Below are positions 10,193-59,608 of a stretch of 64,000 nucleotides of DNA, in pieces (the first letter of the stretch is position 1; each line of letters begins with the position of its first letter). The DNA is taken from the sequence record MW057919.1, one strand, 5' to 3'. Under the pieces are notes generated by a model. It was given only the letters and a program-made list of their open reading frames with translations. It searched no databases and was not told the DNA's origin. Position numbers and translations under genes: made by a program.

Positions 10193-10217
10193 ACCCTCCC
10201 CTTTATTGGGGAGGGAT
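10193..10217 (+). terminator. intrinsic terminator
   Basis: CCCTCCCC-TTTATT-GGGGAGGG. Confidence 0.8.
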
Positions 10218-47122: not shown

Positions 47123-47275
47123 ATGGAAGGAATGAAATATGTAGCATTGTTTTTAGTTATAGCGGTTTTAGGTAGTACGCTAATTGGTATTAATAAAATT
47201 ATCAATATAGGTGATATCGATGGATACCGATCAGAAAAAGAAAGAATCACCGAAATTCAATCCTATCATAAATAG
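47123..47275 (+). CDS. small membrane protein (50 aa)
   Basis: GAGGT SD; MEGMKYVALFLVIAVLGSTLIGINKI... Confidence 0.65.
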   Translation: MEGMKYVALFLVIAVLGSTLIGINKIINIGDIDGYRSEKERITEIQSYHK

Positions 47276-54435: not shown

Positions 54436-55308
54436 ATGGCACGTCGTTCTAATAAAATTCGTATTGGTTTTAACGTATCGCTTAAAGCGCTTGAACGAAA
54501 TGGATCTGATGTAATTAAACTACATGATGACATCATATCTTGTTTTAGTGAACTATATCAAAATTACGTAAAAATTGATACAACTACTGACAAAGATGAC
54601 AAATCACTAAAACAAGGCATTATTGATGTCGTGGTGTATGTCGATCTAAATACAGCGAACCAAGCCATTCGTTTTAAAGGTATTAGTGATCTGGTAAACC
54701 ATCTACAGTTTAATGTAATGGCGAATGATGTTATCGTCGATACAAGTGAATATATTCAGCCTAGCCATATGTCATATATCGAAGATGGTCACCTGAATAT
54801 GTTAGTGCGTCGAGAAGGTAAAGAGGTTATCAAAACCATTTTCACTGATGAATATGGTGTTGATCCACTAGTTAATAATGGATCAATAGGAGATGGATGT
54901 AGTGTTTCCGGGATCTATCTAATTGGTGAAGAAAATCGGGTTAATAAACTGGCACGTATTGTTTCTAACAACATTCGCAACGGAGAGTTTAATTTCAAGA
55001 CCGAAATAGGTATCCGTAAATTCTATTGGAGTGTACTCGGAAAACCAAGTGCGCAATTTAAGTATATCCACAGTGTGGTATTTAAGTACATCCACAATGA
55101 AATATGGAACCGTAATAGTTTCTATGTGGATACACTGATTAAGCTAACCAATGGCAAAGTTTATAGCTATGCTAAGAATGGTTTTGTTGGTGGACCTACT
55201 GAACTAGAATTCCATTATTATGGTGTAACTGATCGAGAAAATTGGGATAATGCGTCAGACAATTTCCTATATCAGGAATTCGAGCAAAGTTGGTCTGTAA
55301 AAATCTAA
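54436..55308 (+). CDS. hypothetical protein (290 aa)
   Basis: AGGTG SD. Confidence 0.85.
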   Translation: MARRSNKIRIGFNVSLKALERNGSDVIKLHDDIISCFSELYQNYVKIDTTTDKDDKSLKQGIIDVVVYVDLNTANQAIRFKGISDLVNHLQFNVMANDVIVDTSEYIQPSHMSYIEDGHLNMLVRREGKEVIKTIFTDEYGVDPLVNNGSIGDGCSVSGIYLIGEENRVNKLARIVSNNIRNGEFNFKTEIGIRKFYWSVLGKPSAQFKYIHSVVFKYIHNEIWNRNSFYVDTLIKLTNGKVYSYAKNGFVGGPTELEFHYYGVTDRENWDNASDNFLYQEFEQSWSVKI

Positions 55309-55315
55309 TACATAA

Positions 55316-55333
55316 AGGGCTCTTCGGAGCCCT
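55316..55333. terminator. bidirectional terminator abutting truncated tRNA
   Basis: AGGGCTC-TTCG-GAGCCCT; CATAAA on the left gives the minus-strand T-rich tail. Confidence 0.8.
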
Positions 55334-55369
55334 AACAGTCATTTGCTCTACCGACTGAGCTATCACGGA
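55333..55369 (-). pseudogene. tRNA-Asn(GTT) 5' half only
   Basis: TCCGTGA TA GCTC AGTCGGTA GAGC A AATGA CT GTT A, then terminator; no T-arm or 3' acceptor. Confidence 0.85.
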
Positions 55370-55375
55370 ATTAAA

Positions 55376-57051: not shown

Positions 57052-57504
57052 TCAACGTGGCCATTGTAAAGAAGTTATCTTATTACCATTAATGTAGACA
57101 TCGGTCACTTCGCACCAATCATTAATTCTGTGTTCAATAATTGGAACATCATTTCGGCCAGCCACTCCAATCATATTCCATTTAACATAAATATTCATTA
57201 GATCAATTGTTAATTTCTCTTTTATGAGTTTAGGAGAAATTAATTTAATATTATTAATGTTAAAGAAGTAATTATTAACTTCTTCTAAATATTCATTAGT
57301 ATTAGTAGTACTAACTTTGCCTTCATGTTCAAGTGAGGATGGTTTATTCTGATTTACAATATTGCTCACTAGACTTCTTAAAACGGCACTTGCCCTACCA
57401 GCTTCGCGTCTTTTATACTTATCATAGTCTTTTACATTAGCTGCAATTTTATCAAATTCTTTTTGGGCATAGATTAGCCCTGGTAAAAGTTCATTTTTGA
57501 TCAT
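57052..57504 (-). CDS. hypothetical protein (150 aa)
   Basis: Co-oriented minus-strand ORF. Confidence 0.75.
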   Translation of the reverse strand: MIKNELLPGLIYAQKEFDKIAANVKDYDKYKRREAGRASAVLRSLVSNIVNQNKPSSLEHEGKVSTTNTNEYLEEVNNYFFNINNIKLISPKLIKEKLTIDLMNIYVKWNMIGVAGRNDVPIIEHRINDWCEVTDVYINGNKITSLQWPR

Positions 57505-57559
57505 TTTATAATTACTCTATGTTGTTTATACATATTTTAATATACATACGTAAAAACAA

Positions 57560-57712
57560 AATATAAAGCCTCCCCGAAGGGAGGCGATATATCGTCATTA
57601 ATGCCCAGCAAAGAGTTTTACTCTCTGGGAGCCAGTTGGAAGGGGGACTGGCTCCGATTTATTATGACTAATGTAGAAACGAGGGGGAGGGATCATTTCT
57701 ACATATCATTAC
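57560..57712 (-). ncRNA. putative sRNA with two C-rich (anti-SD-like) loops
   Basis: 9-bp and 8-bp perfect stems with loops UGAUCCCUCCCCCUCG and CCCCCUUCCA, a three-way junction, own promoter motif and terminator. Confidence 0.65.
57568..57585 (-). terminator. intrinsic terminator
   Basis: GCCTCCC-TTCG-GGGAGGC + TTTATATTTT on minus strand. Confidence 0.85.
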
Positions 57713-57723
57713 ATACTCAGTAA
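57708..57723 (-). promoter_or_regulatory. putative late promoter of the sRNA
   Basis: TTACTGAGTATGTAAT, 14/16 identical to the tRNA-Asp upstream motif. Confidence 0.65.
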
Positions 57724-57724
57724 G

Positions 57725-59608
57725 TTATTCTTCAATACCAATGACCGTATTGCGTTCATTGGTGTTCTCTACGGTTGAACCACTTGGGAAGCTACTGACA
57801 GATGCTTGCATTAGTTTCAACATGTCGATAGCAAATACTCGATATGTAGATTCAACCTTAGCGTCGTCGTACGATGCATGAATGTTAAGAATGGCATTAT
57901 CGGCCCTTTTAGCCAGCAGATATACATCCTCAAGAGCATCTTTATCTTTAATAGTGGATAGCTTATGTTTGTAGATATCCCCATTGACAGATAGGTCAGG
58001 ATACTGGGCTACCCAAGTGTCCGCAATAGTCTTAGTGTTGTTAGACAGAACGTCAATGATAACGTTAGCTGCTTCCACAATACCGGTAGCATCAAGCAAC
58101 TTAATCTTAGCACCAGCATTATCTGGCCATTTGGGTTCTTGGAAGTTTGTCTTTACATTGGGTTTCCATTCAGCCAGAAGAGTAGCGACTTTCTTAGGGT
58201 CTTGCCAATCATTCCCTTTGAACAGATTAACCACGGGGGCTAGTATCTTACTGTTCTCATCCAGAACTTTCTGGTTGTGACGATCAGCTTTAGCTACAGC
58301 ATTAGTGATATTGGCTTTTGCGGTCTTAGGATCATTAGACGCGAACGTCTCGTAACTCGATACTTTTACTTCGCCGGTTTTAAGCTTTGCTTCTGCCACC
58401 CATTTGGCATCACCATAGGTACTTTTCAGTGTAGCAATAGCTTTCTTCTTTTTATCAAGATTGATCTCAGGGCCAGAGTCGAAGATACTCTTAATGGTGT
58501 CGATAAGACCTTCATTTGAGACTTGTATAAAACCGGGAGTATTAACGATGGACTTCTCTACATACCCGCCACGAATAACTCGATTTATAAAACCATTAAG
58601 ACCACTACCAGTTTCGGCCATATCTTTCATGATTTCTATATTTGTTTCACCAGCACTCTGGGCATTGTATAAATAATAAGAACCATCTTTAAATTTTAGT
58701 ATAATCCAGTCATCTCCAGTTAGATATGAATCAATATTACTATCATTCATACTTTGGTATTTAATGAATTCTGGATTAGTACTTAGTACTTCTTCAATAA
58801 ACTCTTCTAATGCCGCAGAATTATTAATAGCATCAACAGGTGGAATTTCACCATCAATGGGTTCAGTAGTTGGACCAGTAACAATGGCAGGTAACGGATC
58901 CTCCTCTACAATAACAGTTTCTTCCACTGGTAGAGCACCACATGAAGCATCAATTAGTTTATTAAAACTACTAATGATCTCACCAAGTGCTACAAGAACT
59001 GCTGGCTGTTCAACTTGTTCAACTTTAGCAATACCAGTTTCTGTAAATTCTTCAGTGATTCGGTTATAAACTTCTACTAGTTGGTTAGTAAGTTCTGCTA
59101 CTTTTGACAGAGTCTGCTTAGACAGAGGTTCAACTACAGTTGTATCTGCTTCAACAAAAATAGAATCATCTTCTTCTAAACGGCTAGTATTAGCTGAGCC
59201 AGCTGTGAAGTTATAAGGCATATCTTGAATTACTTCATTAATTTCAGATGCCTCCATATCTTCATTTAGACGACCACTATAAGTACGCATCATACCTTCT
59301 GCTTCTTTAATAGTGGAATGCGCTAAGCGTCCCCAATCACCACGCATAATACCGCGCTCGGTAAGACCGCGTGCAGCTGAACCAAGATCAATAGGTTCTT
59401 CAATAAATGATTGTTCTTCAACCCACTCTTCATTACTGTAACATTCTTTTAGAATGGTTTTAAATTTAGTACTAAAGGGTTGTAGAATCTTTTTATCTAC
59501 TTGTTCAACATTTGTTTTAAAGTGTTCTAGACTTGGTGTAGCTTTTGAAGATACTTTTTCAGTACCGCTATATAGCGTACGGTTTAGGAAGTTTAGCATT
59601 TTATTCAT
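57725..59608 (-). CDS. head/inner-body-type virion protein with acidic propeptide (gp303-like)
   Basis: Acidic N-terminal half, SLE and SNE|G protease-type motifs, KTSC-like segment. Confidence 0.7.
   Translation of the reverse strand: MNKMLNFLNRTLYSGTEKVSSKATPSLEHFKTNVEQVDKKILQPFSTKFKTILKECYSNEEWVEEQSFIEEPIDLGSAARGLTERGIMRGDWGRLAHSTIKEAEGMMRTYSGRLNEDMEASEINEVIQDMPYNFTAGSANTSRLEEDDSIFVEADTTVVEPLSKQTLSKVAELTNQLVEVYNRITEEFTETGIAKVEQVEQPAVLVALGEIISSFNKLIDASCGALPVEETVIVEEDPLPAIVTGPTTEPIDGEIPPVDAINNSAALEEFIEEVLSTNPEFIKYQSMNDSNIDSYLTGDDWIILKFKDGSYYLYNAQSAGETNIEIMKDMAETGSGLNGFINRVIRGGYVEKSIVNTPGFIQVSNEGLIDTIKSIFDSGPEINLDKKKKAIATLKSTYGDAKWVAEAKLKTGEVKVSSYETFASNDPKTAKANITNAVAKADRHNQKVLDENSKILAPVVNLFKGNDWQDPKKVATLLAEWKPNVKTNFQEPKWPDNAGAKIKLLDATGIVEAANVIIDVLSNNTKTIADTWVAQYPDLSVNGDIYKHKLSTIKDKDALEDVYLLAKRADNAILNIHASYDDAKVESTYRVFAIDMLKLMQASVSSFPSGSTVENTNERNTVIGIEE

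Follow-up and report, generated by a model that had tools for sequence, protein, structure and literature searches.

A structured small RNA with conserved C/U-rich loops downstream of the gp303 homologue in Phikzvirus and related jumbo phages

Organization of the locus and transcription signals

The window analyzed here, a stretch of 64,000 nucleotides from sequence record MW057919.1, belongs to a phage of the genus Phikzvirus and carries on its minus strand a small RNA that is located between a gp303-like gene and the gp302 homologue, upstream of the phage tRNA cluster. According to the annotation and to the supplement entry for phiKZ TU238, the same region doubles as the 3' UTR of the gp303-homologue mRNA. 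The features of the locus are the following:

57725-59608, minus strand: upstream gene, homologue of phiKZ gp303 (virion structural or head protein), 627 codons, from annotation
57702-57723, minus strand: promoter (TTACTG, 2 nt, TATGTAAT, 2 nt, TATG), abutting the TSS just past the upstream stop codon; aligned with phiKZ P144 of the published map entries
57560-57701, minus strand: small RNA, 142 positions including both ends; the orthologue is published as 141 nt in the phiKZ entry
57560-57585, minus strand: intrinsic terminator and 3' end (7-bp stem, UUCG loop, UUUAU tail); phiKZ T131 in the published map entries
57530-57550, minus strand: second promoter with tandem TATGTA, inferred TSS 57530; phiKZ P143 of the map entries by alignment, serving the gp302 homologue and tRNAs
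57052-57504, minus strand: downstream gene, homologue of PHIKZ302 (gp302), reached by read-through according to annotation and the entries for TU233-236

The existence of the small RNA is already known from phiKZ. In the sections on this locus, Putzeys et al. (2024, microLife; PMC10914365, Fig. 6B and Table S7) describe an abundant small intergenic transcript of 141 nt upstream of PHIKZ302 with its 3' end at T131, which was found by ONT-cappable-seq, confirmed by Northern blot with probe JVO-21409 and accompanied by a read-through form. The entries for this interval in the preprint supplement (10.1101/2023.10.13.562163) specify TU237 at 274148-274007 on the minus strand (141 nt), with promoter P144 (TSS 274148), typed as a 'late promoter' and not seen before, and terminator T131 (TTS 274007). 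The same entries contain TU233-236 as read-through units into PHIKZ302 and the tRNAs, as well as TU238, the gp304-gp303 mRNA, which ends at T131 as well. These sections of PMC10914365 label the RNA a PHIKZ302 5'UTR-derived ncRNA candidate with 'conditional termination' and assign neither a structure nor a function to TU237, nor do they trace its conservation outside the genus. Table S7 of the preprint, in its entry for this RNA, prints plus-strand letters for the minus-strand RNA at phiKZ 274007-274148, so that the RNAfold value given there (-48.7) is that of the antisense sequence.

The RNA region of the window shares 96% identity with phiKZ over 177 nt and 100% identity with the genomes of several Pseudomonas aeruginosa phages of the genus Phikzvirus; the homology covers the whole RNA, and the promoter core, the terminator and the strand are the same at both loci. 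By alignment, the ends published in the phiKZ entry map onto position 57701, the T of the second TATGT, and onto position 57560. A primary 5' end and a discrete species of about 141 nt were recorded in phiKZ, and in MW057919.1 it is the promoter and terminator letters of this RNA that are read. The RNA is almost certainly the orthologue of phiKZ TU237 (the '5'UTR_PHIKZ302' candidate), that is to say a stable, non-coding and highly structured RNA of about 141 nt whose TATG-type promoter, placed at the gp303-like stop codon, is used by the non-virion RNA polymerase of the phage itself and whose 3' end is set by an intrinsic terminator of the usual phage type. A preliminary description of this DNA, all quoted letters of which were found on the minus strand within 57560-57723, had proposed a discrete minus-strand small RNA with its own promoter and a UUCG terminator, as is published for phiKZ with Northern blot evidence in the sections cited above. 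The 3' end proposed near 57560 coincides exactly with the mapped phiKZ TTS, whereas the 5' end proposed near 57712 lies 11 nt too far upstream of the mapped TSS at 57701 in the second TATGT.

The core of the promoter is invariant in Phikzvirus, Pawinskivirus and PhiPA3. The complete 23-nt geometry (TTACTG, 2 nt, TATGTAAT, 2 nt, TATGT) is repeated with identical spacing before tRNA-Asp at 55497-55475, a promoter type that the phage RNA and tRNA-Asp thus have in common. Before tRNA-Leu the motif recurs loosely only, and the near-identity to the motif upstream of the tRNA units that had been noted earlier holds for tRNA-Asp but not for tRNA-Leu. In its supplement entry, the tRNA-Asp promoter of phiKZ is classed as 'middle', and Wicke et al. 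observed it at 10 min. The copy in phiKZ proper differs from that of the window in lacking the upstream half of the promoter motif, the full TTACTG...TATGTAAT element being present in the latter, and this may be why the phiKZ copy was typed 'late'. In the phage of the window, the small RNA is presumably expressed at the middle or late stage.

The terminator hairpin GCCUCCC-UUCG-GGGAGGC, followed by UUUAU at 57585-57568 (minus strand), fits the published phiKZ terminator consensus. Just downstream of T131, the supplement entries place P143 (TSS 273977), a 'late promoter' that was also seen by Wicke et al. Since a promoter of the P143 type is located directly past the terminator, the gp302-tRNA operon is independent of read-through from the promoter of the small RNA. 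The designation as the 5' UTR of PHIKZ302 is just part of the picture. The locus moreover has the organization of a type I 3'UTR-derived sRNA, with its own promoter right after the upstream stop codon and, in the phiKZ entries, a terminator common to TU238 and TU237.

The arrangement of gp303-like gene, RNA and tRNA-Leu cluster on one strand is apparent from the annotations of PA7, phiKZ, PS119XW, phiHQ, BRkr and PhiPA3. Four tRNAs were predicted in the window by ARAGORN (Leu-UAA, Pro-UGG, Met-CAU and Asp-GUC), and Rfam at gathering thresholds likewise yielded four tRNAs. Downstream of the RNA region, the window is collinear only with vB_PaeM_kmuB (266.6 kb). At 55334-55371 (minus strand) it contains only the 5' half of the phiKZ tRNA-Asn gene, up to the anticodon, and the 3' half is found nowhere in the window. 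Homology to phiKZ and PA7 ends at 55333, and the segment that continues past this position in the window is located about 12-14 kb further on in other Phikzviruses. The break and the displaced segment point to a deletion of about 12 kb or to an assembly join, with one end in the anticodon loop of tRNA-Asn. Both the PHIKZ298 homologue and the locus of a further phiKZ ncRNA that has been published would be expected in the missing 12 kb or so. A 290-codon open reading frame at 54436-55308 (plus strand) is convergent on the truncated tRNA-Asn gene. A Pfam search with the flanking proteins and this 290-aa product detected no family above threshold, the single match of the latter being too far below the cut-off to indicate a function.

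Predicted fold, homologues and covariation

A 170-nt stretch of the minus strand was predicted to fold with -60 kcal/mol (z = -6.3; none of 200 dinucleotide shuffles was as good), whereas the opposite strand folds more weakly (z = -3.9). The transcript between the published ends (57701-57560) reached -52 kcal/mol (z = -6.4) and comprises hairpin 1, the terminator and, between them, a three-way junction that contains hairpins 2 and 3:

57674-57701, minus strand: hairpin 1, 9-bp stem UAGAAAUGA/UCGUUUCUA with the 10-nt loop UCCCUCCCCC at 57683-57692, from folding
57594-57668, minus strand: three-way junction, closing stem GUCAUAAU / AUU-A-AUGAC around hairpins 2 and 3, from folding
57628-57655, minus strand: hairpin 2, stem GGAGCCAG / CUGGCUCC with a 12-nt loop, core CCCUUCCA at 57637-57644
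57609-57627, minus strand: hairpin 3, CAGAGAG / CUCUUUG with the loop UAAAA, from folding

This model retains the main elements of the preliminary fold. The 9-bp stem of hairpin 1 was recovered, but its exact arms follow from the mapped 5' end at 57701, which defines the pairing UAGAAAUGA/UCGUUUCUA. The three-way junction is predicted and conserved, but its closing stem carries a bulged A. The outer CCCAG/CUGGG helix that had been drawn for hairpin 3 was abandoned, as it claims two C residues in common with hairpin 2 and the relatives back the pairing CAGAGAG/CUCUUUG. On the plus strand, a simple scan flagged 57628-57655 (hairpin 2 followed by GATTTATTAT) as terminator-like; no plus-strand transcript is known here.

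Homologues with 72-78% identity were detected by blastn in Pawinskivirus (PS119XW, phiHQ, BRkr, PA1C and HHBS36_1) and in PhiPA3 (Miltoncavirus), in each case directly after a gp303-like gene. The RNA region was the sole part of a 191-nt query that blastn aligned to Pawinskivirus, the neighbouring proteins being 40-66% identical. The Pawinskivirus genomes have retained the RNA without the gp302 gene, and the RNA is located there directly before tRNA-Leu. When folded separately, the RNAs of PS119XW and PhiPA3 adopted the same architecture as the window copy. A first covariance model, built on five Phikzvirus sequences alone, produced full-length matches to PhiPA3 (51 bits, E = 4e-10) and Pawinskivirus (46-49 bits), and detected a single copy, hence no paralogue, in the window. 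A second covariance model recovered HPP-Temi with 88 bits. Phabio, Viktualia and 201phi2-1 have hosts other than P. aeruginosa, and the roughly 6 kb of syntenic sequence searched in each genome contained nothing that scored above 8 bits. Pattern and protein scans of IMG/VR returned PA7 itself alone, and a metagenome pattern scan one chance hairpin that matched 24 model positions only. The Pawinskivirus RNA carries about 45 extra nt between junction and terminator, including a third C-rich run, CCCCUCCUUUC; the corresponding stretch is found in phiHQ, PA1C and HPP-Temi.

Among nine distinct sequences, 95.7% of the cells in the alignment were paired and both sides had changed in 13 of the 32 pairs, a number that was reached by none of 500 shuffles and compares with at most five in slid controls; these figures represent about four independent lineages in an alignment that was fitted to the structure by the model, with a doubtful placement of the junction stem in PhiPA3. 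The double changes include five of the nine pairs of hairpin 1 among the relatives and six of the eight pairs of the junction closing stem, which in Pawinskivirus and PhiPA3 consists of unrelated yet complementary letters, e.g. GACCACAGC / GUUGUGGUC in PS119XW. In hairpin 3, one pair runs through A-U, G-C and U-A between the genera, and the loop reads UAARA or CAAGA. The stem of hairpin 2 is 100% paired, with a top pair that changes from G-C to C-G or A-U, while six of its eight pairs never vary. Compensatory changes in relatives had been named beforehand as a check of the stems, and they are found in three genera along with the covariance-model matches.

The core of loop 2, CCCUUCCA, is identical in eight distinct sequences and additionally in HPP-Temi, and is predicted to be unpaired in five lineages with a probability of 0.99-1.00. 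It is invariant despite the full replacement of the surrounding junction stem and represents the kind of accessible, conserved single-stranded seed that is expected of a trans-acting sRNA. Loop 1 reads GAUCCCUCCCCCUC in Phikzvirus, GUCACUCCUC in Pawinskivirus and CCUACUCCUCG in PhiPA3, with a CUCC core kept in all of them and a probability of being unpaired of 0.8-1.0 in four of five lineages. Of the two C-rich loops that had been described at the outset, the C/U-rich apical character is thus conserved, but long C-runs in loop 1 occur in Phikzvirus alone, the other genera having the CUCC core only. The homologues in two further genera, the covarying fold and the invariant loop 2 are new descriptive results.

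Comparison with known RNA families

The Rfam search of the RNA region yielded no family. Under permissive thresholds ar14, PK-PYVV, SAM-III, Phe_leader and others appeared far below their cut-offs, and only tRNAs passed. The best model below threshold was that of cuckoo/ar14 (RF02344) with 19.9 bits versus a gathering threshold of 58.8, and the relatives from other genera gave no match to RF02344 at E <= 1. Like this CcsR-type family of Alphaproteobacteria, the phage RNA comprises tandem hairpins with C-rich, possibly anti-SD-like loops, and the family model aligns both loops to its loop motifs; cuckoo/ar14 differs in that it belongs to another host clade, is not a phage gene and has a family model without a three-way junction. 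Where RF02344 would have two or more hairpin loops with a CCUCCUCCC-type motif, the phage RNA has two C-rich loops, whose conserved parts are just the CUCC core of loop 1 and CCCUUCCA of loop 2. The resemblance to cuckoo/CcsR that was pointed out in the preliminary description is therefore an analogy in design and neither homology nor family membership. In S. aureus RNAIII and RsaE-type sRNAs, C-rich (UCCC) apical loops pair with G-rich ribosome-binding sites; these RNAs share the proposed principle of the C-rich loop with the phage RNA but no sequence or structural relationship.

With respect to gene organization, the phage RNA resembles type I 3'UTR-derived sRNAs that are transcribed from a promoter of their own where the upstream gene ends, such as DapZ and MicL in enterobacteria, both in the position of the promoter at the upstream stop codon and in the terminator shared with the upstream mRNA. 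It differs from them in being made by the phage multisubunit RNA polymerase from a TATG-type promoter. The tRNA cluster of T4 contains two stable RNAs of unknown function. These RNAs and ncRNA1 and ncRNA2 of PAK_P3, as entered in Table S7, are likewise abundant, structured and located beside phage tRNA genes; no sequence similarity to them was found, and the RNA described here has its own terminator instead of being released by tRNA processing.

Possible modes of action

Beyond the transcript known from phiKZ, its ends, the fold and the conserved loops, we infer, tentatively and with somewhat less than even confidence, that the RNA acts in trans by base-pairing with specific G-rich targets, probably host transcripts. 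The rigid scaffold of hairpin 1 and the three-way junction would display two single-stranded C/U-rich loops, and these loops (CCCUUCCA and the CUCC-core loop 1) would be seeds for G-rich sequences of the GGAAGGG or GGAG(G) type. The partners would most plausibly be Shine-Dalgarno-like regions of a few specific mRNAs, host mRNAs being likelier than phage mRNAs, and pairing would reduce the translation or stability of the targets at mid to late infection. An anti-Shine-Dalgarno mechanism of this kind, which had been suggested in the preliminary description, is compatible with the sequence data. That earlier interpretation is partly supported, namely with regard to the RNA, its strand, its promoter and terminator and its C-rich loops.

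K-mer and duplex scans of the 64-kb window gave no target for the proposed pairing, their matches being confined to terminator arms and weak ribosome-binding sites. Apart from the antisense strand of the RNA itself, the window does not contain the exact complement of the loop-2 core, and the sense-strand sites for it comprise just one 7-mer inside a gene. Ribosome-binding sites of the phage are short in this region, with GGAGG in three of 102 upstream regions. Pairing between the loops and ribosome-binding sites is predicted to be weak, with mean energies of -5.5 and -4.9 kcal/mol that do not surpass those of a generic anti-SD reference, a 13-nt '16S 3' tail' string composed of 10 letters from the preliminary description and three further, unverified ones. 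Since the phage sites in the window are short, long G-rich partners are likelier to be host sequences. A general competition with ribosomes for all SD sequences appears stoichiometrically implausible. At 47124 (plus strand), an AT-rich intergenic stretch contains TGGAAGG, a 7/8 complement of the loop-2 core, a few nt upstream of ATG codons; it is the only RBS-like partial match seen in the window.

Two properties of the RNA argue against trans pairing. Loop 1 differs greatly between the genera, and the stem of hairpin 2 is nearly invariant, which is more typical of a hairpin recognized by a protein than of a mere seed holder. The RNA might alternatively bind a phage or host protein by means of hairpin 2 and the other loops in order to titrate, recruit or localize it, a reading that we consider rather unlikely and place second, behind trans pairing and ahead of a mainly cis-acting role. 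The conservation of hairpin 2, comprising six of eight stem pairs and the eight loop letters, extends far beyond the needs of pairing and contrasts with the fully replaced junction stem around it, and the scans of the window revealed no RNA target. No candidate protein is known, however, and the C/U-rich loops are unlike the motifs of well-known Pseudomonas RNA-binding proteins, RsmA binding GGA and Hfq/Crc A-rich sites.

Somewhat less probable than protein binding is a role mainly in cis, in which the region would be a 3' UTR and terminator module of the gp304-gp303 mRNA and a leader or attenuator of the gp302-tRNA operon, with the 141-nt species as a by-product of strong termination. This reading agrees with the phiKZ map entries, in which T131 ends the gp303 mRNA (TU238) and P144 gives rise both to transcripts that end at T131 and to others that extend into gp302 and the tRNAs (TU233-236), as well as with the 'conditional termination' of a 5'UTR-derived RNA in the locus description of Putzeys et al. 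(PMC10914365). The cis role is weakened, however, by the separate promoter P143 of the map entries, which serves the operon from just past the terminator, by the persistence of the RNA in Pawinskivirus without gp302, by a covarying scaffold of 110 nt with an invariant loop that a plain terminator does not need, and by the lack of a conserved antiterminator. The sole partner of the G-rich arm of the terminator is loop 1, and the corresponding alternative fold is 11 kcal/mol worse and impossible in the other genera. A cis antiterminator or riboswitch leader was rejected in the same context, as no conserved competing pairing was detected and no Rfam leader or riboswitch came near threshold.

The remaining explanations are improbable. 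In all three genera, loop 1 seems to resemble the 3' tail of 16S rRNA in the letters quoted for it in the preliminary description. The RNA could on this basis be a mimic of that tail, with loop 2 as a second pyrimidine-rich decoy and without regulation of mRNAs, but such a function is improbable. The mimic would be carried beside the tRNAs for the purpose that phage tRNAs presumably have, namely to absorb or blunt a host factor that attacks the translation apparatus; in the case of the mimic, this factor might be an endoribonuclease, or else a protein for modification or defence, aimed at the anti-SD region. Ideas relating the RNA to tRNAs, i.e. a codon-like CCA in loop 2 or pairing with the anticodon loop of tRNA-Pro, were dropped because the complementary letters are not conserved in other genera.

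Very improbable, slightly more so than the mimic, is an invasion of the G-rich 3' arms (GGGRRGG type) of the phage's own terminators by the loops. Loop 1 of Phikzvirus resembles the 5' arm of the published terminator consensus, GGGAGGG and GGGGAGG occur 20 and 11 times in the window, and duplexes with the arms are predicted at -8.5 to -11.2 kcal/mol. The perfect 10-nt complement of loop 1 that had been reported in a terminator, GGGGAGGGAT, was indeed located at 10208-10217 inside the terminator at 10195-10217, but with many terminators of one motif family such a match to one of them is expected. The arms are, however, sequestered by stable hairpins of their own, and no CCYCCCC run occurs in loop 1 of Pawinskivirus or PhiPA3 even though these phages have the same terminator type.

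That the region encodes a small protein, or acts through a plus-strand RNA (as an RsmA sponge that offers several GGA sites), is hardly credible: a 33-codon ORF starts at AUG 57695, a 40-codon ORF spans 57601-57723 on the plus strand and tiny ORFs are annotated in some records, but AUG 57695 is ATA in phiKZ, T2P and 124.01 and absent in other genera, where the ORFs start upstream of the mapped TSS, the amino acids change non-conservatively exactly at compensated RNA pairs, the plus-strand ORF is missing in phiKZ and Pawinskivirus, and the TSS and TTS entries retrieved for the interval are all on the minus strand, the plus-strand fold being weaker. With neither start codon nor amino-acid sequence conserved, a small protein gene was rejected, and the dismissal of the plus strand in the preliminary description agrees with the map entries for this interval and with the z-score of its fold. 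Automatic annotation has placed 'hypothetical proteins' of 30-35 codons inside the Pawinskivirus RNA, which are not conserved between genera and look spurious.

To our knowledge, the function is known for very few of the small RNAs that lytic phages make, and for none of those from phiKZ. The literature searched contained no paper that assigns a function to the phiKZ 141-nt RNA, and reviews up to mid-2026, in the passages on this phage, mention merely that phiKZ 'expresses non-coding RNAs'. The RNA can now be described as a family that is defined by a covarying scaffold and an invariant 8-nt loop in three genera of nucleus-forming P. aeruginosa jumbo phages. This description makes comparative target prediction and interactome analysis feasible and singles out loop 2 as the place to look, and the conserved loops are a useful lead on a real, previously reported RNA. 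If the loops pair with G-rich ribosome-binding sites, the RNA would represent a phage counterpart of the cuckoo/RNAIII principle and would provide a phage that possesses its own transcription machinery with a route to tune translation in the host cytoplasm.
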